From contig RQSC01000520.1 of the NCBI GenBank assembly GCA_013416795.1, positions 1 to 10,041 of the forward strand: DNA of 10,041 nucleotides, read 5' to 3'. The position numbers and the translations under genes are program-made. Below the pieces are notes generated by a model that was not told the DNA's origin, searched no databases, and worked only from the letters and a program-made list of their open reading frames with translations. Positions 1 through 10,041 of the stretch are shown piece after piece. The number at the start of each line of letters is the position of its first letter. Position 1 is the stretch's first letter. The DNA comes from Prasinococcaceae sp. CCMP 1430 (taxonomy: Eukaryota > Plantae > Prasinodermophyta).

Positions 1-169
1 TCGCGGCTGGGAGCGCGCTCGCGCGCTCGCTCGCGTGCGCGCGCGCCCGTTCGCGCGTGGGGTGGAGGGGCGCGCGAGAGAGTGCTGGCTGGTGCGCGAG
101 TTGAGCGCCGGTGCGCGCGCGCCCACCTGAAGCAGAAAAGATGGGCTCGGCGAAAAATGGGGGCAACGA

Positions 170-185
170 CGCGCGCGCGCGCGCG
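170..185. repeat. (CG)8 dinucleotide run, Z-DNA-prone
   Basis: cgcgcgcgcgcgcgcg read directly; purine/pyrimidine alternation extends over 169..189. Confidence 0.85.
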
Positions 186-197
186 TGCGGGAGGCCC

Positions 198-219
198 GGG
201 GGGAAGGGGAGGGGGCGGG
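198..219 (+). other. Canonical G-quadruplex motif
   Basis: GGGGGG-AA-GGGG-A-GGGGG-C-GGG: four tracts of at least 3 G with 1-2 nt loops. Folding is predicted, not shown. Confidence 0.6.
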
Positions 220-630
220 AGGTTTCTGGGGTGTGCGCGCGCGGCGCCCGGCAGGGCTTCGGGTGAGGGTGCCGCAGTGCCCTGCCCGCGCGGCGCGCAG
301 GAAGGCCCGCGGCAGGGTCGGGGGCGCGCCTTTCGAACTCTGGGTCGCGCGTGTCTCGGCGTGCACCAAAGTTCCTCGCCTCATGTTTTGGTGGAGTTTG
401 GCGTGGATGCGTGGCGCGGTGCCCGCGAGCGGAGCACGCGGCAGCCGGTGGGCTGCTGTCGCTTGCCCCGCTTCGTCATCTTGCTCGTGCTCGGTCGAGT
501 CGTTTCAGACGCACGAAAAGACCGCCACGCTTTGAACGCAGCGCCCCAAGGAGCGCCGGCTGACGAACGGCGCGCGCGCCCATCCTCCTTGCCTCGCCGC
601 GCTCGCCCGCGCAGCCTCCCGCCTGCCGCC

Positions 631-1209
631 ATGTTCAAGAACACGTTCCAGAGCGGCTTCCTGTCGATCCTGTACTCGATCGGCTCGAAGCCGCTCGCCA
701 TCTGGGAGAAGAAGGTGCGCAACGGCCACATCAAGCGCGTGACCGACAAGGACATCCAGTCGCTCGTGCTCGAGATCGTTGGTGCGAATGTCACCACCAA
801 CTTCATGACGTGCCCCGCGGAGCCGACGCAGACGCTCGGCATCAAGCTGCCGTTCCTGGTGATGATCATCAAGAACCTCAAGAAGTACTTCACCTTCGAG
901 GTGCAGGTGCTCGACGACAAGAACGTCCGCCGCAGGTTCCGCGCGTCCAACTACCAGTCGACCACGCGCGTGAAGCCCTTCATCTGCACGATGCCCATGC
1001 GCCTCGACGAGGGCTGGAACCAGATCCAGTTCAACCTTAGCGACTTCACGCGCCGCGCATACGGCACCAACTACATCGAGACGCTGCGCGTGCAGATCCA
1101 CGCCAACTGCCGCATCCGCCGCATCTACTTCTCGGACAGGCTCTACTCCGAGGAGGAGCTGCCGCCTGAGTTCAAGCTCTTCCTGCCCATCCAGAAGGGC
1201 AGCGAGTAA
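631..1209 (+). CDS. CFAP20: Cilia- and flagella-associated protein 20 (CFAP20/BUG22/FAP20), 192 aa, intronless
   Basis: The translation [22 protein letters not shown]...VRNGHIKR...[68 protein letters not shown]...[26 protein letters not shown] is the near-invariant CFAP20 sequence. The ATG at 631 is in a gccgccATG context and codons are strongly C/G-ending. The ORF-track extension from 82 is not part of the protein. Confidence 0.97.
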
Positions 1210-2131: not shown

Positions 2132-2224
2132 CTCTGGTGGCAGCGGTGCGCCGCCGCCGGGGCTGATGCCGCCGTGCGACGCGAGCGCGGCCAGGCACCG
2201 CCGGCCGCCTCGGCAGCAGCGGCG

Positions 2225-5200
2225 ATGCGCGGCGCGCTCGGCGCGCGGGGCACGCTGTCGCAGGCCGCGCCGATGTGCTACGTCAACGGCCGGCGGCATG
2301 CGCTGCCGCACGGCGCTGGTGACGTCACGCTGCTCGAGTTCCTGCGCGAGAGGCGGCTCACGGGGACGAAGCTCGGCTGCGGCGAGGGCGGCTGCGGCGC
2401 TTGCACGGTGATGGTGTCGTCGTGGGACGGCGCGGCCGGCAAGCCACGGCACCGCGCAGTGAATGCGTGCCTCGCGCCACTGTACAGCGTCGAGGGCTGC
2501 CACGTGGTGACGGTGGAGGGCATCGGCAACCGCAATGCGGGGCTGCATCCGCTGCAGGCGCGGCTCGCGGCCGCGCACGGCTCGCAGTGCGGCTTCTGCA
2601 CGCCTGGCTTCGTGATGAGCGCGTATGCGCTCATGCGCGAGAACGCGGCACCGCAAGATGCCGACGTGGAGCGCGCGCTTGCGGGCAACCTGTGCCGCTG
2701 CACGGGCTACCGCCCCATCATGCGCGCATTCACCGAGCTGGCCAGGGAGGCACGCGAGGGAAAGGCCTCGGCCAAGGAGGTCTCGCCTGCGGGGGGCGTC
2801 TGCCCGTCGACGGGCAAGCCGTGCGGCTGCGGGGCGAAGAGTACCGCGAGTGCGGACGTCGCGGACGAGGGTGCCGCTGCCGCGAGGCAGGAGGAGGGGC
2901 TCGTGACGCCAGCCGAGCCCATCTTCCCGCCCGAGCTGCGCCGTCGCGTCGCAGTGCCGCTCTACCTTCCGGGCGAGCGCGCCACGTGGCACCGCCCGCA
3001 CGAGCTTCAGGCGCTGCTCGAGCTCGTGCGCGCGCATCCAAAGGCGCGGATCGTCGGTGGCAACACCGAGGTCGGCGTCGAGGCGCGCTTCAAAGGCGTC
3101 GAGGACGCGGTGTTGATTGCCCCAACGCACGTGCCAGAGCTCACCAAGCTCGAGGAGACCCCTAATGGCCTCCGCGTCGGCGGCGCGGTCACCCTTACCG
3201 ACCTCGAAATGCTCTGCCATGAGATCGCTGCCGAGCGTCCCGCGGCGTGCGCAGCCGCCAAAGCCGTCGCGTCGCAGCTCGAGTGGTTTGCAGGCGCGCA
3301 GATCCGCAACGTGGCGACCATCGCGGGCAACATCTGCACAGCGTCGCCCATCTCCGACCTCAACCCAATTCTCATTGCGTGCGGTGCCACGTTCACTCTC
3401 GCCAAGAGCGACGGCAAGGGCGCGGCCACGACGCGCGAAGTTGCCGCCGCGGACTTCTTCGTCGGCTACAGGAAGACGCTCTTGGAGGAGAGCGAGGTAC
3501 TTCTGGCGGTCACGCTGCCGCGGTCGGCGGCGGAGGGCGTTGGGGGTGCGCTCGACATCGTGCACGACTTCAAGCAGTCGCACCGCCGCGAGGACGACAT
3601 CGCCATCGTAACTGCCGGCGTGCGCGTGCTCATCGTGCCCCGCGCAGATGGCGCCTACCTAGTCAAAGAGGCGGGCGTCGGCATGGGCGGCGTCGCGCCC
3701 CGCACAATCCGCTGTGCGGCCGTCGAGGCGGCTCTTGTGGGCAGGGTTTGGGGCGAAGGTGCGCTCGACGCGGCGCTCAAGGCCGTGCGCCGGGACGTCT
3801 CGCTTCCGGAGAATGTCCCTGGCGGCATGCCCGAGTACCGCATGTCGCTGTCTTCGGCAGTCATCTTCAAGTTCTATGCCAAGGTGAGCCTGGAGCTGCC
3901 TGAGTCTTCCGTGGTCGATTTTGGCGGCCGTGCGCGCGCAGAGCTGCAGTCGGCCGCAGGCAGTGTCCCCCGGCAGGCGTGCACGGGCGAGCCCTCGTGG
4001 GCGCCGCCAATCGAGGGCACCCAGGAGGTCGGCCACGAGCGCGTGCACGTCGCCGCCGAGATGCAGGTGACCGGCGAGGCACAGTACGTCGACGACGTCC
4101 CGTACCCGGCGGGGTGCCTTTTCGCGTACCCCGTGCTCTCCGAGCGCCCGCACGCGAAGCTGCTGGCCGTGGACCCCACCAAGGCGCTGGCAATTGAGGG
4201 CGTCGAAGGGTACTTTGGGGCGGACGATGTGCCCGGCAACAACGCGATTGGGCCCGTCGTGCAGGACGAGCAGTGCTTTGTGGCCGTGGGGACGGCGGTG
4301 CCGTGCGTGGGCGCCGTGATCGGACTCGTTGTGGCGGAGAGCGAGGCCGCCGCGCGTCGCGGGGCGCGCGCGGTGGAGGTGCAGTATGAGGAACTCAGGC
4401 CCGTCCTGACCATCGAGGATGCCATCGCCGCGGGCTCGTACCTAGCAGGCACGGGAGAGAAACCGCACACGCTCGTCAAGGGCAATCCTGAAGGTGTCAT
4501 TGCCGCGGTCGAATGCGGCGAGGGGCCGGCCGGTGCCAAAGTTGTGCGCGGTGAGATAAAGATCGGTGGGCAGGAGCACTTCTACCTCGAACCGATGAGC
4601 ACGGTTGTGATCCCGGGAGAGGGGGGCGAGATGGTGATCCTCCAGTCGACGCAGTGCCCCAACAAGAGCCAGCGTATGGTCGCCGGTGTCCTGGGCTGTG
4701 ACGCCAACCGCATCGTGTGCCGCACCAAACGCATGGGGGGTGGCTTCGGTGGGAAGGAGACACGCGCCGCCTTCCTCTGTGCGGCAGCCGCCGTGCCCGC
4801 GCGCCACCTCGGGCGTAGTGTGCGCCTCGTGCTGGACCGCGACGTCGATATGAAGACTACTGGCACGCGCCACCCGTTCATGGGCCGCTACGCCGTCGCG
4901 CACGATGCCGAGGGCAAGGTTCTCGCCGCCGACGTGCAGCTTTGGTCCAACGGCGGCTATTCGTGCGACCTGAGCATCCCGATCATTGATCGCGCGGCCT
5001 TCCACTCGGACAACTGCTACGGCGTTGAGAACTTTCGTGTGCGCGCGACCGCCTGCAAGACCAACCTGCCGACCAACACGGCCTTCCGTGGCTTCGGTGG
5101 ACCGCAGGGACTTATTGTAGCTGAGACATGGATCGCGCACGTGGCCGTGTCGGCAGGCCTCGCCGAGGAAGTCGTGCGCGAGCGAAACATTTATACGGCG

Positions 5201-6367
5201 GGATCTGCGACGCCGTTCGGGCAGGAGCTGCCGGCGGACGAATGGAACGTGCCCGCCATTTGGTCGCAGCTCAAGGACCGAGCTGCCTTCGCGGCGCGCC
5301 AGGCCGAGGTGGATACCTTCAACGCTGCCAATCGCTGGCGCAAGCGCGGCCTCGCGATGGTGCCCACCAAGTTCGGCATCTCTTTCACGACCAAGTTCAT
5401 GAACCAAGGCGCTTCGCTCGTGCACGTGTACACCGACGGCACGGTGTTGGTGACGCACGGCGGCACGGAGATGGGACAGGGCCTGCACACGAAGGTGTGC
5501 CAGGTGGCTGCCGAGTCGCTGGGCGTGCCTCTGTCCGCGGTGCACGTGGCGGACACCACCACCGACAAGATCCCAAACGCTTCGCCCACCGCGGCCAGTG
5601 CGTCGAGCGACCTGTACGGCATGGCCACCAAGCTCGCGTGCGACGAGCTCATGAAGCGCCTTGCGCCGTACCGCACAGACGAGGGGCGCGACTGGCTTGC
5701 GAGTGCGGCGATGTCGGCGCACCTCGACCGCGTTGATCTCAGCGAGCACGGCTTCTACGCCACGCCTGACATCAGTGGGTGGGACTGGGACAACCCCTCG
5801 CCAAAGGGCCGTCCCTTCAACTACTTCACGCAGGGCGCGGCGGTCGCCGAGGTTGAGCTGGACTGCCTCACGGGCGACGCCGCCGTCAGGCGCGCGGACG
5901 TGCTCATGGACCTCGGGCGTTCCATCAACCCGGCCATCGACGTGGGGCAGATCGAGGGCGCCTTCGTGCAGGGCCTTGGCTGGTGCATGCTCGAGGAGCT
6001 GAAGTGGGGCGACTCGGCGCACGCGTGGGGCAGGCCGGGGCACCTCATCAGCGTGGGGCCGGGCGCGTACAAGATCCCCGCCGCGAGCGACGCCCCTGCT
6101 GACTTCCGCGTGCACCTGCTGCAGGGGGTCGAGAACCCGCGCGCGGTGCACTCGTCGAAGGCAGTCGGTGAGCCGCCCTTCTTCCTCGCGGCGAGCGCAT
6201 GGTGCGCGTTGCGGCAAGCGGCGGCCGCCGCGCGCTCTGACGCGGGCCACTCGGGTTTCTTCCGCCTCGACGCGCCCGCGACGCCCGAGCGTGTCCGCAT
6301 GGTATGCGCCGATGCGATCACCGCGGACGTGGCGGGCCCGCACTTTGTCGCCAGGCTCAGCTGCTAG
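2225..6367 (+). CDS. XDH: Xanthine dehydrogenase (2x[2Fe-2S], FAD, molybdopterin), ~1380 aa, intronless
   Basis: Fe-S motifs GTKLGCGEGGCGAC, QCGFCTPG and GNLCRCTGY. FAD region FAGAQIRNVATIAGNICTASPISDLNP and KQSHRREDDIA. Moco region GGQEHFYLE, GGGFGGKET (bovine Glu802), IIDRAAFHSDNCY (Arg880), TAFRGFGGPQ (Phe914), KFGISFT (Phe1009/Thr1010) and SKAVGEPP (Glu1261). The Glu802 and Arg880 equivalents favour XDH over aldehyde oxidase. The start is uncertain (ATG 2225 or 2273); the ORF-track start at 1904 is low-complexity and probably non-coding. Confidence 0.93.
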   Translation: MRGALGARGTLSQAAPMCYVNGRRHALPHGAGDVTLLEFLRERRLTGTKLGCGEGGCGACTVMVSSWDGAAGKPRHRAVNACLAPLYSVEGCHVVTVEGIGNRNAGLHPLQARLAAAHGSQCGFCTPGFVMSAYALMRENAAPQDADVERALAGNLCRCTGYRPIMRAFTELAREAREGKASAKEVSPAGGVCPSTGKPCGCGAKSTASADVADEGAAAARQEEGLVTPAEPIFPPELRRRVAVPLYLPGERATWHRPHELQALLELVRAHPKARIVGGNTEVGVEARFKGVEDAVLIAPTHVPELTKLEETPNGLRVGGAVTLTDLEMLCHEIAAERPAACAAAKAVASQLEWFAGAQIRNVATIAGNICTASPISDLNPILIACGATFTLAKSDGKGAATTREVAAADFFVGYRKTLLEESEVLLAVTLPRSAAEGVGGALDIVHDFKQSHRREDDIAIVTAGVRVLIVPRADGAYLVKEAGVGMGGVAPRTIRCAAVEAALVGRVWGEGALDAALKAVRRDVSLPENVPGGMPEYRMSLSSAVIFKFYAKVSLELPESSVVDFGGRARAELQSAAGSVPRQACTGEPSWAPPIEGTQEVGHERVHVAAEMQVTGEAQYVDDVPYPAGCLFAYPVLSERPHAKLLAVDPTKALAIEGVEGYFGADDVPGNNAIGPVVQDEQCFVAVGTAVPCVGAVIGLVVAESEAAARRGARAVEVQYEELRPVLTIEDAIAAGSYLAGTGEKPHTLVKGNPEGVIAAVECGEGPAGAKVVRGEIKIGGQEHFYLEPMSTVVIPGEGGEMVILQSTQCPNKSQRMVAGVLGCDANRIVCRTKRMGGGFGGKETRAAFLCAAAAVPARHLGRSVRLVLDRDVDMKTTGTRHPFMGRYAVAHDAEGKVLAADVQLWSNGGYSCDLSIPIIDRAAFHSDNCYGVENFRVRATACKTNLPTNTAFRGFGGPQGLIVAETWIAHVAVSAGLAEEVVRERNIYTAGSATPFGQELPADEWNVPAIWSQLKDRAAFAARQAEVDTFNAANRWRKRGLAMVPTKFGISFTTKFMNQGASLVHVYTDGTVLVTHGGTEMGQGLHTKVCQVAAESLGVPLSAVHVADTTTDKIPNASPTAASASSDLYGMATKLACDELMKRLAPYRTDEGRDWLASAAMSAHLDRVDLSEHGFYATPDISGWDWDNPSPKGRPFNYFTQGAAVAEVELDCLTGDAAVRRADVLMDLGRSINPAIDVGQIEGAFVQGLGWCMLEELKWGDSAHAWGRPGHLISVGPGAYKIPAASDAPADFRVHLLQGVENPRAVHSSKAVGEPPFFLAASAWCALRQAAAAARSDAGHSGFFRLDAPATPERVRMVCADAITADVAGPHFVARLSC

Positions 6368-6535: not shown

Positions 6536-7609
6536 TCAGAGCTTGGCGTCCACCATGGCAGCCATCATGACGACGTCCTCGGGGATGTCCTCGGTGGCCG
6601 TGGAGCCCACCACGAGGTCCATGTACATGGGCGAGATGCCGCTGCCCGGACCCTTGGTGGTGATCATCTCGCGCGTGATGGTGGTGCCCTTGGGGATCGC
6701 GACCGCCGACACGACCGACTTCGCGAGCTTGGTGAAGACGGGGGCCTCGCTCTCCATGCGCTTCTTCTCGCACGAGCCGAGCGCCTCCTCCACCACCGCG
6801 ATGTCACGAATGAGCGTCTCGATGCCCTTGGGCTCGAGCGAAGCCGCGTGGTCGCCGCCCTTCATGGTGCGATCGAGCGTGATGTGGCGCTCGACGACCT
6901 TGGCGCCCATCGCCACCGCGGCGAGCGAGATCTGCAGGCCCTTCTCGTGGCCGGAGTAGCCGATCACGCACTGCGGGAACTCCTTCTGGTACGTGCGCAG
7001 CACGCGCAGGTTGGTCTCGCTGACCTTCGTCGGGTAGGTGGAGGTGCACTGCAGCAGCACGATCTTGTCGACGAAGCGCGTCACCAGCTTGAGCGCCGTG
7101 CGCACGGTCTCCATCTCGGCCATGCCGGTCGAGAGGATGAGCGGCTTGCCCTTGCGCGCGGTGTGCTCCAGCAGCGGGAAGTTGGTGAGGTCGGCCGAAG
7201 CCACCTTGTAGAAGGGGCAGCCGACGCGGTCGAGGAAGTCCACGCTGTCCTCGTCCCAGCCCGACGCGAAGAAGAGGATGCCGACCTCGTCGGCGTACTT
7301 CTTCATCTCGTTCCACTCGGGCTCGCCCAGCTCGAGCGCGTGCTTGTGCTCGCCGTAGGTGGGGCCGAAAGAGTTCTTGTTCACGTACGGCTTCATCAGG
7401 CCCTCCTTGGAGAGGATGCGCTCCACGGTGCGCTTCTGGAACTTGACGGCGTCGCAGCCCACGTCCTTGGCCATCTTGATCAGCTTCTTGGCGATCTCCA
7501 CGTCGCCCTGGTGGTTGATGCCGGCCTCGCCGATCACGAAGCACTTGTTGGTGCCGCCCACGCTCACGCCGGGGGCGATGTCGAAGGCCTTGTCACAGAA
7601 GGGGACCAT
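6536..7609 (-). other. NANS: NANS/NeuB unit 2 (C-terminal): TIM barrel plus SAF/AFP-like domain
   Basis: [79 protein letters not shown]: the conserved catalytic and metal-binding motifs of NeuB/NANS. Confidence 0.92.
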
Positions 7610-9947
7610 GTCGGGCTTGATCGTCAGCGCCTGGCTGTTGACGGGCGACTCGGTGGACGCCTCAGGGAAGGTCGCGCTCACCACCTCGGGCTTCATCACG
7701 ACGTCCTCGGGGATGTCCTCGGTGGCCGTGGAGCCCACCACGAGGTCCATGTACATGGGCGAGATGCCGCTGCCCGGACCCTTGGTGGTGATCATCTCGC
7801 GCGTGATGGTGGTGCCCTTGGGGATCGCGACCGCCGACACGACCGACTTCGCGAGCTTGGTGAAGACGGGGGCCTCGCTCTCCATGCGCTTCTTCTCGCA
7901 CGAGCCGAGCGCCTCCTCCACCACCGCGATGTCACGAATGAGCGTCTCGATGCCCTTGGGCTCGAGCGAAGCCGCGTGGTCGCCGCCCTTCATGGTGCGA
8001 TCGAGCGTGATGTGGCGCTCGACGACCTTGGCGCCCATCGCCACCGCGGCGAGCGAGATCTGCAGGCCCTTCTCGTGGCCGGAGTAGCCGATCACGCACT
8101 GCGGGAACTCCTTCTGGTACGTGCGCAGCACGCGCAGGTTGGTCTCGCTGACCTTCGTCGGGTAGGTGGAGGTGCACTGCAGCAGCACGATCTTGTCGAC
8201 GAAGCGCGTCACCAGCTTGAGCGCCGTGCGCACGGTCTCCATCTCGGCCATGCCGGTCGAGAGGATGAGCGGCTTGCCCTTGCGCGCGGTGTGCTCCAGC
8301 AGCGGGAAGTTGGTGAGGTCGGCCGAAGCCACCTTGTAGAAGGGGCAGCCGACGCGGTCGAGGAAGTCCACGCTGTCCTCGTCCCAGCCCGACGCGAAGA
8401 AGAGGATGCCGACCTCGTCGGCGTACTTCTTCATCTCGTTCCACTCGGGCTCGCCCAGCTCGAGCGCGTGCTTGTGCTCGCCGTAGGTGGGGCCGAAAGA
8501 GTTCTTGTTCACGTACGGCTTCATCAGGCCCTCCTTGGAGAGGATGCGCTCCACGGTGCGCTTCTGGAACTTGACGGCGTCGCAGCCCACGTCCTTGGCC
8601 ATCTTGATCAGCTTCTTGGCGATCTCCACGTCGCCCTGGTGGTTGATGCCGGCCTCGCCGATCACGAAGCACTTGTTGGTGCCGCCCACGCTCACGCCGG
8701 GGGCGATCTGGAACTCGTTGGGCTCGAAGGGCGCGATCTTGGCGCCGAAGTACCCGTACTTGGGAGCGAGCTTCTGCATGATCTCCAGGTCGACCTGGCT
8801 GTCAATCTCCTGATACGTGTGCTCGGGCATCTCGTAGTGGGCAATCTTGCCGCCGAGGCGCGAGCCAGTGTCCTTGAGCGTGGCCGCGCGCGTGAGGTAG
8901 AACGCGCCGTTCTCAACGAGCTGGCCCTGCCAGTCCTGGCGGCGGGGGCGCTTGGCGGGGTTGTAGTCCAGCGCCTCGCCCGCCTCGTTCCAGTGGAAGC
9001 GGTGCGTGCGCACGACGGTCACGAGCGAGTCCGCCTTCTCCTCCTGGAGCTTGGCGATCGCGTTGGCGAAGTCGGTGGGCTGCGTGAGCGGCGAGGTCGG
9101 CTGGATCATGCAGATGACGTCAAACTCGTCCTTGTTGGAGCTCACGAAATCCTCGAGCACGGACTCGGACGAGGCCGTGTCCGTCGAGGCTGCGGCGGAG
9201 CGCATGTGCACCTTGGCACCCGACGCCTGGGGGAGGCGCGAGCGGCCCGCCAGGTTCAGCAGCGGGGTGTCCGCGGCGAGCTGCGTGTCAGCACGGGCAG
9301 GCGGACGATCGGGCGCGGTCGTTCAGGGAGCGCCCGATCGGAGCGGAGGGCAAGGCAGGGCCGACCTGCGCCTGAAGGGCGCGGCCGCCGTGGACACTGC
9401 GAAACGCACGCGCGCGCGATGGACCCAGGCGCGCGCGCGCGATGGACCCAGGCGGGGCGGAGTCGCGGCTGACCGCCGCACGTCGGTGACGAGAAAAGCG
9501 ACATGCTGGCCGCCGCACGCGGCGCAGCGCGGCGCGGCGCCGTGCGGGGTCCTCCCGAGGCATGCACGTGCAGCGCGTCCTCGAGCCGAGGAGTGCACCA
9601 CTCATGCGCTGCGTTGCGCTGCGCTGCGCTGCGCTGCGCTGCCAAGCGAGGGGGTGAAACGATTCCACGGAAAGGGGCGGCGCGGGGCGGCGGCGTGCCG
9701 CTGCCGGCCGGCCCCACCCCCGCAGCAGAAGCAGAATTCAATTCGCGCCGGGCGGGCTGCGCACCTTGGCGACGGCGGCGACCTCGTCGTCATCGGTCGA
9801 CACCCAGACCGCGCCGAAGGCGCCCGAGTCGATCGCCGCGCAGATCGTCCAGTCAATGAGCGGCCGCCCGCACAGGTGGCGCACGTTCTTGCGCGGCACG
9901 CCCTTGCTGCCGCCGCGCGCGGGGATGACGGCGACGACGCGCGCCAT
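6536..9947 (-). CDS. CMAS-NANS-NANS fusion: CMP-sialic acid synthetase domain plus two tandem sialic acid (9-phosphate) synthase units; exon 1 9765..9947, exon 2 6536..9226; 957 aa
   Basis: Exon 1 (61 codons) gives [21 protein letters not shown]...[13 protein letters not shown] phase-0 splice joins it to [10 protein letters not shown]..., restoring the CMAS segment VAKxxGAxVHxRS with no gap. Exon 2 is an open 896-codon frame with [21 protein letters not shown] and YGYFG, then two copies of the NeuB fold. Confidence 0.9.
6570..7579. repeat. 1010-nt direct repeat, copy A
   Basis: No mismatch found by eye against 7698..8707 (offset 1128). The overlapping off-frame ORFs 6804..7544 and 7932..8672 also translate identically. 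Confidence 0.92.
7667..8737 (-). other. NANS: NANS/NeuB unit 1 (middle of the fusion)
   Basis: Same motif set as unit 2; begins about 2 codons after the CMAS-terminal YGYFG. Confidence 0.92.
7698..8707. repeat. 1010-nt direct repeat, copy B
   Basis: Identical by eye to 6570..7579; separated from it by a unique in-frame 118-nt spacer (7580..7697). Confidence 0.92.
9409..9454. repeat. Perfect 23-nt tandem duplication inside the intron
   Basis: cgcgcgcgcgatggacccaggcg at 9409..9431 and 9432..9454. Confidence 0.85.
9606..9640. repeat. (GCGCT)7 pentanucleotide microsatellite inside the intron
   Basis: gcgct gcgtt gcgct gcgct gcgct gcgct gcgct (one imperfect unit). Confidence 0.85.
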
Positions 9948-10041
9948 CGCTGGCGGCTGCTGCGCGCGGCTGGCGGGTACGAATAACAACGGCGGCTGCG
10001 GGCGGGCGGGCGGCGCGCGGGCGCCCGGCACGTCCGCTGTG

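Follow-up and report, generated by a model that had tools for sequence, protein, structure and literature searches.

The question raised by this locus was whether a single gene of a marine microalga can encode, in one continuous chain, both the enzyme that activates nonulosonic acids and two copies of the enzyme that makes them. Within the window, that is, the whole 10,041-nucleotide stretch of DNA that was analysed, a minus-strand gene of two exons (9947-9765 and 9226-6536) was found, whose spliced length of 2874 nt corresponds to 957 codons with a sole, terminal stop. We consider it likely that we are dealing with an authentic nuclear gene that a GC-rich marine picoeukaryote expresses, with a CMP-nonulosonate synthetase and two identical synthase units in one 957-aa chain, and that it was doubled before a species split, was subsequently gene-converted, and would yield a pseudo-dimer with CMP-Kdn as its product. 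The features of the gene, in the order of transcription, are as follows.

9765-9947, minus strand: exon 1 (start codon 9947-9945, 61 codons), with the P-loop at the N terminus of the CMP-sialic acid synthetase (CMAS) module
9227-9764, minus strand: spliceosomal intron of 538 nt, GT..AG, with short tandem repeats inside (9409-9454 and 9605-9642)
8747-9226, minus strand: first part of exon 2, the remaining CMAS module, with dimerisation segment, metal-site motif EIDSQVD and gatekeeper Arg codon (8860-8858)
7698-8707, minus strand: synthase unit A, made up of a NeuB TIM barrel and a SAF/antifreeze-like domain; copy 1 of an exact 1010-bp repeat
7580-7697, minus strand: linker between the units, unique and in frame, 118 nt, 39 aa, Pro/Ser/Thr-rich and predicted to be disordered
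6570-7579, minus strand: synthase unit B, again a NeuB and a SAF domain; the second copy of that exact 1010-bp repeat
6536-6569, minus strand: C-terminal tail MAAMVDAKL and stop (stop codon 6538-6536)

From the N to the C terminus of the 957-aa protein, the modules thus run CTP_transf_3, NeuB plus SAF, the 39-aa linker, and NeuB plus SAF again. The three-module CMAS-NANS-NANS frame that had been proposed by the sequence-only reading was borne out by the open spliced frame and by the Pfam domains, as two NeuB stretches (PF03102; profile positions 1-240 of 241; summed E 1e-163) and two SAF stretches (PF08666) were all above gathering scores; the TIGR03569 NeuB_NnaB model additionally scored 657 bits summed over both units. 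Its claim that no stop separates the modules also held, the frame being open throughout both in this species and in the sister species described below. The minus-strand ORF is open over 6536-9211 and was prolonged to the acceptor at 9226 before being joined with exon 1. The CTP_transf_3 domain (PF02348) is split by the intron, with profile positions 1-57 in exon 1 (E 1.5e-17) and positions 60-181 in exon 2. An intronless orthologue, P0002, is colinear with exon 1 and aligns without gaps over the splice site, and no equivalent of the intron at 9227-9764 is present either in P0002 or in P0251, the sister species lacking it. Furthermore, metatranscriptome contigs from cDNA libraries had the 538-nt intron removed precisely as predicted, with the joint 9225|9764 (cut +1), skipping 538 nt, seen in RNA contigs from two runs (X16 and X17) and a loose end matching the same joint in a third (X15). 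The exon 1 RNA contigs extend from 9764 to about 10040.

A feature absent from the sequence-only reading is that 6570-7579 and 7698-8707 are identical over 1010 bp, with zero mismatches and a period of 1128 bp, while the intervening linker (7580-7697) occurs once in the window. The 118-nt linker was present together with both of its junctions in the DNA run X1 and in the RNA runs X15 and X17. As this unique linker has repeat sequence on both sides, at least two units are required. In X1, the repeat had a k-mer depth of 64.1, compared with 34.2 in the linker, 29.4 in the CMAS part and 37.5 in the tail contig, so that the linker lies at single-copy depth and the repeat at about 1.9 times that depth; in X15, the repeat had a depth of 33.7 and the linker 16.2. 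The X1 tail contig joins the C-terminal tail to the repeat end at single-copy depth, although, with the read analysis covering 7480-10041, the junction of unit B with the tail is seen solely via a 35-nt overlap of this contig. The same layout was found in Tara metagenome scaffolds L001 and L009, which are 99.2% and 98.4% identical to the window and represent slightly different strains, and, over two species, at least five Tara scaffolds yielded the two-unit form. At the RNA level, one contig joins the CMAS part to a synthase unit and another contains the repeat start, the linker and one entire unit; the 1010-bp repeat is too long for short-read contigs to cross, and no single read or cDNA covers all three modules. 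On the linker, the depth ratios and the independent scaffolds, an artefactual origin of the second synthase unit was rejected.

The best-surviving alternative, which we nevertheless regard as unlikely, is that the locus is polymorphic, with one-unit and two-unit alleles coexisting through unequal crossing-over and a doubling that is neutral or transient and has no special structural role. A perfect 1-kb tandem repeat would be an ideal substrate for unequal exchange, and one-unit as well as two-unit forms occur in the assemblies of both species, the former being represented by the proteins P0239 (513 aa) and P0002 (582 aa) and by several low-coverage genomic contigs (L002, L003, L007 and L008). 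In X16, which gave no linker contig, RNA contig 14 passes straight from the repeat end into the tail. However, all of the one-unit contigs are short-read MEGAHIT or SPAdes products, the SPAdes pair L003 and L007 is labelled cov 5, and skipping of the loop is the outcome expected of an assembler at low coverage. Moreover, the linker-to-repeat depth ratio of 0.48 in X15 implies that about 90% of transcripts are of the two-unit form, and this form, its linker in frame and equally long, has been kept in two species that are separated by a dS of about 0.5 to 0.9.

It was also considered whether the modules are uncoupled once the gene has been transcribed or translated, through alternative splicing, an internal start or cleavage of the linker by proteases, giving separate CMAS-NANS and NANS proteins or separate CMAS and NANS. 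The disorder predicted for the linker is in keeping with this possibility, as is an RNA depth that is about two- to three-fold higher over the linker and units than over the CMAS part (8.5 in the CMAS part versus 16.2 in the linker for X15; 14.8 in the CMAS part versus 44 in the contig with unit and linker for X17). Such a gradient is, however, consistent with the ordinary 3' bias of cDNA libraries, the intron joint was the only joint reported from the metatranscriptome contigs, with no clustered molecule ends, and the reading frame is uninterrupted in both species; we judge uncoupling to be decidedly improbable. The remaining explanation, that the assembler traversed a repeat loop twice and that the true gene encodes about 581 aa in a 1:1 CMAS-NANS arrangement, would account for the one-unit contigs of both species and for X16 contig 14, but is ruled out as a serious candidate, at a very small residual probability, by the presence of the repeat-flanked linker, by the depth ratios in both X1 and X15 and by the independent two-unit scaffolds of two species.

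The two-unit gene indicates that the alga expresses the two key enzymes as one protein, and its history can be followed in a sister species of 85% amino acid identity, in which the same 1:2 gene (P0251) was found on L004-L006. The two units of either species match each other at 100% identity, which is partly forced in de Bruijn assemblies, and between the species the units are 86.1% identical. Because the units are identical within species yet 14% different between species, the repeat is, judged from these comparisons, an older duplication under concerted evolution. Both species have a linker of 39 aa and the same leader motif in unit B (PFC..FD), and independent duplications in the two species were rejected on these two features together with the common period of 1128 bp. 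An in-frame tandem duplication of 1128 bp would predate the split from the sister species, and gene conversion since then would keep the core of about 1 kb identical inside each. In comparison with the sister species, dN/dS was 0.14 for the units, 0.20 for the CMAS module and 0.86 for the linker. A homogenised internal duplication seen in two species would provide a tidy natural example of intragenic concerted evolution.

NeuB enzymes work as domain-swapped homodimers, each active site being covered by the SAF domain of the partner chain. In the AF2 model of the paired units (pLDDT 93, pTM 0.91), this swapped arrangement lies inside one chain, with the unit B SAF domain sitting on the unit A barrel and the centre of the linker at pLDDT below 50. 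A whole protomer of Neisseria meningitidis NeuB (NmNeuB) superposes on unit B at an rmsd of 2.5 Å over 345 residues (for one unit of the model, TM 0.90 and rmsd 2.5-2.7 Å), and Bacillus subtilis SpsE (1vli) superposes on the unit A barrel plus the unit B SAF domain (model range 14..737). The alignment of unit B was shallow in the fold job, since MAFFT put every single-unit homologue on unit A, but the model was still confident. According to this model, the two units may be packed like a domain-swapped NeuB homodimer, as a natural single-chain dimer; as AF2 is prone to arrange tandem copies in the manner of the parent family's homodimer, this packing is to be read as a prediction.

Should the packing be correct, the tandem units would supply the NeuB-type swapped dimer within one chain, and the CMAS module could thereby enter the homodimer that it obligatorily forms. 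Such a protein is predicted to assemble as a dimer that combines two CMAS with four synthase sites, the latter adding capacity at the slow synthase step; NeuB-family enzymes have a kcat of about 1 to 15 per min (PMC6200933). This full proposal, of a single-chain domain-swapped dimer whose units are gene-converted to stay identical, with CMAS freed to dimerise and a 2:1 ratio of synthase to activator, is a tentative one, to which we attach a little less than an even chance. If true, the protein would rank as the first CMP-Kdn 'assembly line' of a eukaryote and its gene as a clear natural instance of intragenic concerted evolution preserving a pseudo-homodimer, and it may also exemplify the natural covalent linking of a domain-swapped dimer.

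The catalytic residues of the units were compared with those of NmNeuB (PDB 1XUU/1XUZ), which shares the TIM barrel plus antifreeze-like SAF fold but is only 28% identical to the units and forms its dimer between two chains, whereas the dimer here is predicted inside one. Conserved positions relative to 1xuu are E25, K53, Q55, K129, S132, S154, Y186, S213, H215, H236 and D247, comprising the metal-binding His pair and the PEP/sugar site, and the same positions were invariant in an 80-sequence alignment. N184 of NmNeuB is Ser in these units. Arg314, which in NmNeuB is contributed by the partner's SAF domain and is essential, aligns with the Gly of TKGPGSG, the preceding Lys being conserved, and K-G-P-G occupies this position across the whole clade of close relatives. 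The Gly is probably a sign that the sugar substrate differs, not that the units are inactive.

Sialic-acid-type sugars are a recent discovery in microalgae and are thought to be important for how cell surfaces and viruses interact. The best solved relative of the CMAS module is PpNeuA, the CMP-Kdn synthetase of the microalga Prymnesium parvum (9t4z; E 4e-44, about 52% identity over 158 residues, counted on the alignment). The P-loop PxRxGSKGxxxKN, the cytosine-binding Arg, the dimerisation segment and the metal-binding D-x-x-D motif are all present, and in the alignment to PpNeuA the equivalents of Arg78 and Thr82 and the motif EIDSQVD are matched. The spliced protein has Arg at residue 184, as does the sister species, and this hydrophilic gatekeeper aligns with PpNeuA Arg196 (chain residue 214, the offset of 18 having been checked on R78 and T82), while mouse CMAS (1qwj) has Leu, the residue of Neu5Ac-type enzymes. 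PpNeuA is homodimeric, its active sites lie at the interface, Arg196 gates its Kdn specificity, and its kcat is 4.7 per s (PMC12934254). As the gatekeeper arginine is kept, the likeliest product is probably CMP-Kdn, made from a mannose-type substrate and PEP, with Man-6-P, ManNAc-6-P and the free sugars as candidate substrates of the synthase; the gatekeeper residue is, however, an imperfect predictor, since omCMAS prefers Kdn despite Leu at this position (PMC12934254).

The two microalgal systems share these CMAS residues, but CMAS and synthase are separate proteins in P. parvum and are fused here, one CMAS with two synthase units, and the C-terminal transmembrane segment of P. parvum CMAS has no counterpart in the present CMAS sequence. 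The P. parvum synthase uses a 6-phosphosugar, and if the same applied here, the fused activities would be the non-consecutive steps 1 and 3 of the pathway and a separate phosphatase would be needed for Man-6-P as substrate. The fusion contains no phosphatase module, and as a production unit, the term of the sequence-only reading, it is accordingly incomplete. With its predicted activity, the protein would offer a ready-made multi-enzyme scaffold for chemo-enzymatic CMP-Kdn synthesis. Transcripts of this oceanic picoalga's fusion gene were present in several marine metatranscriptomes, and the gene would serve as a compact handle with which to trace Kdn/sialic-acid capacity in metagenomes and metatranscriptomes.

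That CMAS and NANS are normally separate, as the sequence-only reading had it, proved to be overstated, as 1:1 CTP_transf_3-NeuB-SAF fusions form several large bacterial clusters. These bacterial or virus-like proteins of about 570-590 aa (Planctomycetota, Actinomycetota and Bacteroidota; metagenomic P0004-P0015), known from automatic annotations, have the first two modules in the same order (42-64% identity by best local BLASTP at 36-57% query coverage) but one synthase unit only, and no biochemical study of them was found. Fusions of NeuB, CMAS and a phosphatase filled the Nonomuraea match list. With regard to the 1:2 architecture, literature searches for a natural CMAS-NANS fusion or a double-NeuB protein returned nothing relevant, in agreement with the earlier statement that no description was known; archaeal double-NeuB plus CMAS proteins with the order reversed are, however, already in public databases, and no paper on either order was found. 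These NeuB-NeuB-SAF-CMAS proteins of Woesearchaeota and related archaea (about 950-985 aa; P0016, P0019, P0043, P0078, P0086 and P0262) were the only true two-unit family among the best 150 matches when one unit was used as query against a representative library. In them, too, one polypeptide carries a CMAS and a pair of synthase units, but they are prokaryotic and uncharacterised, carry CMAS last where it is first here, and contain old, diverged paralogues (38% and 32% identical to the present unit) in place of identical copies. Both enzyme families, their fusion and the dimeric architecture being already known, the gene represents no new kind of biology, and its novelty is limited to a real but modest variant of enzyme fusions common in bacteria.

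The contigs on which the nearest 1:1 fusions sit are dense, rich in glycosyltransferases and not algal nuclear DNA. For the present locus, the eukaryotic host proposed earlier was confirmed, because the spliceosomal intron is spliced out in RNA and two neighbour genes are of eukaryote type. One of these encodes a single-chain xanthine dehydrogenase, whose nearest named relatives are from chlorophytes and land plants, at about 50% identity, which is a hint of the green lineage. The other is an ORF which, judged from its translation, we take to encode a CFAP20-like flagellar protein.

The fusion gene was followed on the minus strand, where translation of the window gave an open reading frame from 9211 to 6536 and, upstream of it, a short open reading frame with a start of 17 residues (letters not reproduced). 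Its exons are as follows.

9947-9765, minus strand: exon 1, with donor GT at 9764-9763
9226-6536, minus strand: exon 2, with acceptor AG at 9228-9227

Joined, the two exons comprise 2874 nt, or 957 codons with one stop, which is terminal. The intron divides the CTP_transf_3 domain, the N-terminal 57 positions of the Pfam profile being found in exon 1 and those from position 60 in exon 2. Pfam placed two full NeuB and two SAF domains in the protein, in agreement with NCBIfam, in which NeuB_NnaB scored 657 bits across two stretches. A marine metagenomic orthologue that lacks the intron (P0002, 85% identical) aligned without gaps through the exon junction. When RNA contigs of three metatranscriptome runs (X15, X16, and X17) were placed on 7480-10041, those of X16 and X17 skipped exactly 538 nt, bounded by GT..AG on the gene strand, and the X15 contig stopped at the acceptor, where its loose letters match the end of exon 1. 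The splice is therefore real. The spliced 957-residue CMAS-NANS-NANS frame proposed in the sequence-only reading was thus confirmed by the open reading frame, the Pfam and NCBIfam domains, and the RNA contigs skipping the intron, and the gene is a eukaryotic, intron-bearing, and expressed one.

The intron itself (9227-9764) is not present in the sister-species orthologue, shows indel differences between strains, and contains a 23-nt x2 repeat and (TGCGC)7. In DNA run X1, its part at about 9372-9543 had a k-mer depth of 69-184, compared with 29 in the flanks, and loose ends there led into many other contigs. The intron has the look of a recent gain, repeat-bearing and perhaps introner-like.

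In the assembled contig, synthase unit B (6570-7579) and unit A (7698-8707) show no difference over 1010 bp, repeating every 1128 bp (376 codons) with a unique linker of 118 nt between them, a pattern consistent with gene conversion. Homologous but diverged sequence flanks the identical block on both sides, as seen in the paired ten-residue unit leaders and in the trailing sequences, ten residues versus MAAMVDAKL. As the linker has the repeat on either side, two units are required. In X1, the 1010-nt repeat contig had a k-mer depth of 64.1, about 1.9x that of its flanks, compared with 34.2 for the linker contig (178 nt, with 30-nt overlaps), 29.4 for the CMAS-plus-intron contig, and 37.5 for the tail-plus-neighbour contig, summed contig depth not being equal to copy number. 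This 2:1:1:1 pattern in a single-organism run is hard to explain otherwise than by two units. RNA run X15 gave a depth of 33.7 for the repeat and 16.2 for the linker, and one X17 RNA contig covers 7550-8707, that is, the start of the repeat, the linker, and one whole unit. The two-unit layout was also seen in Tara metagenome scaffolds L001 and L009, whose identities to the window (99.2% and 98.4%, respectively) mark them as different strains.

One-unit contigs were found for both the window species (L007 and L008, which are genomic since both contain the intron) and the sister species (L002 and L003). All are short-read MEGAHIT or SPAdes assemblies, both SPAdes ones carrying the label cov 5, and as a de Bruijn assembler may legitimately bypass a repeat loop, they were read as collapsed. 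Copy-number polymorphism, with one-unit and two-unit forms of the locus, was nevertheless kept as a rival explanation, because RNA run X16 also takes the one-unit path: a 1992-nt contig runs through exon 1, exon 2, and one unit straight into the tail and 3' UTR, and no linker contig was among those placed on 7480-10041 (site 7693-7697). Either that population carries a one-unit allele or the contig is a path taken by the assembler. An origin of the doubling as an assembly artefact was rejected on the basis of the repeat-flanked linker, the depth pattern, and the two Tara scaffolds.

The sister-species cluster includes a two-unit protein of 958 aa (P0251), found on three Tara scaffolds, and the underlying DNA contains an exact 1026-bp repeat, again with a period of 1128 bp. 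A four-way unit alignment gave 86.1% identity between species and 100% within each, the exact zero-difference figure being subject to short-read assembly, which forces repeat copies to be identical, although unit divergence above a few SNPs would have escaped such collapse. Common to both species are a linker of 39 aa and the unit-B leader motif PFC..FD, which differs from that of unit A (PFEP.EFQ). Judged from these shared features, the duplication is older than the species split, with the units homogenised since by concerted evolution. Two species thus retain the internal duplication of the fusion gene in homogenised form.

Divergence between the two species, by part of the fusion gene
CMAS: dN/dS 0.20, dS 0.92
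Synthase units: dN/dS 0.14, dS 0.50
Linker: dN/dS 0.86, dS 1.07

In the comparison of 6570-8707 with sister-species DNA (L004), synonymous divergence of the units was below that of CMAS.

NeuB is a domain-swapped homodimer. The two-unit part (P0001:150-889) was folded with AF2 from an 80-row alignment, giving a model with a mean pLDDT of 93 and a pTM of 0.91, in which predicted disorder is confined to the linker centre. Over 345 residues, at an rmsd of 2.5 A, the whole NmNeuB protomer superposed on unit B (model 387-737). PseI superposed on unit A, and B. subtilis SpsE, in which the SAF domain is positioned on its own barrel, on the barrel of unit A together with unit B's SAF domain, within model range 14..737. 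According to these superpositions, each unit's SAF domain caps the barrel of the other unit in the model. The predicted structure thus has the NeuB dimer formed in cis, AF2 being prone to packing tandem copies like the parent homodimer. Doubling would let the synthase dimer form inside one chain, with the CMAS module dimerising between chains; PpNeuA is a homodimer with active sites located at the interface (PMC12934254). It would also raise the slow synthase sites twofold, the synthase being called the slow step because NeuB-family kcat values are about 1-15 per min (PMC6200933) versus 4.7 per s for PpNeuA (PMC12934254). The product of the fusion gene is plausibly a synthase dimer within a single chain.

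The metal-binding His pair and PEP-site residues of NmNeuB are kept in each unit. The sole exception seen among essential residues was NmNeuB Arg314, contributed by the SAF domain of the partner chain, which aligns with Gly in the units. This Arg has been reported as essential (PDB 4IPI, R314A; 4IPJ, R314K). The best solved relative of the CMAS part, whose P-loop and metal-site motif are intact, was PpNeuA (9T4Z; E 4e-44), a CMP-Kdn synthetase from Prymnesium parvum, a haptophyte, with about 52% identity as counted on the printed alignment, followed by mouse CMAS (1QWJ). Arg196 of PpNeuA gates Kdn specificity, R196L shifting preference to Neu5Ac (PMC12934254). With the deposited chain numbered 18 above the paper (an offset verified on Arg78 and Thr82), this position is Arg in the window (GSRLGGK, codon 8860-8858) and likewise in the sister species, and Leu in mouse CMAS.

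The closest relatives of the unit are single-domain proteins, 60-69% identical and mostly from marine metagenomes, with a few named bacteria and one amoebozoan transcript among them. A fish prediction (Caranx melampygus) was about 52% identical. The C. melampygus gene prediction P0003 (616 aa) has two to three NeuB stretches and one SAF domain only, probably because tandem nans genes were merged into one model.

While the earlier observation and its reading were right, the novelty is narrower than was then supposed. Bacterial 1:1 CTP_transf_3-NeuB-SAF fusions are common, forming several protein-atlas clusters of 50-190 members, and NeuB-CMAS-phosphatase fusions dominate the matches from Nonomuraea and relatives. 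The 1:1 fusions nearest to the window protein are found on dense contigs, rich in glycosyltransferases and of viral or bacterial appearance. Woesearchaeota-like archaea have two-unit proteins too, but with CMAS last and units that are old, diverged paralogues; among the best 150 representatives of 1.84 billion clusters, no further true double occurred besides this archaeal family. A literature search found no paper describing the bacterial 1:1 fusions, the NeuB-CMAS-phosphatase fusions, or the archaeal two-unit proteins.

The closest 1:1 CMAS-NeuB fusions (L010:6122-7843 and L012:4969-6702) adjoin a DegT aminotransferase amid many glycosyltransferases, methyltransferases, DUF1796, and Glyco_transf_17, and their tightly packed contigs resemble glycan islands of giant viruses or bacteria. 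A further unusual sialic-acid-pathway fusion, the ENA metagenome protein P0009 (595 aa; 60% identical to the synthase unit), joins NeuB to a GT29 sialyltransferase domain (PF00777), and P0011 (830 aa) carries CTP_transf_3, SAM methyltransferase, NeuB, and SAF in one chain.

Two further genes lie in the window.

2222-6367, plus strand: eukaryote-type xanthine dehydrogenase, intronless, convergent with the fusion gene
640-1209, plus strand: CFAP20-like (flagellar) protein, as read from translation

The product of 640-1209 reads like CFAP20, a flagellar protein. The 3' ends of the xanthine dehydrogenase and fusion genes are about 170 bp apart, and the sister species shares this adjacency, its two-unit gene again lying beside a convergent xanthine dehydrogenase gene. 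The nearest named relatives of the xanthine dehydrogenase, about 50% identical to it, come from chlorophytes and land plants.
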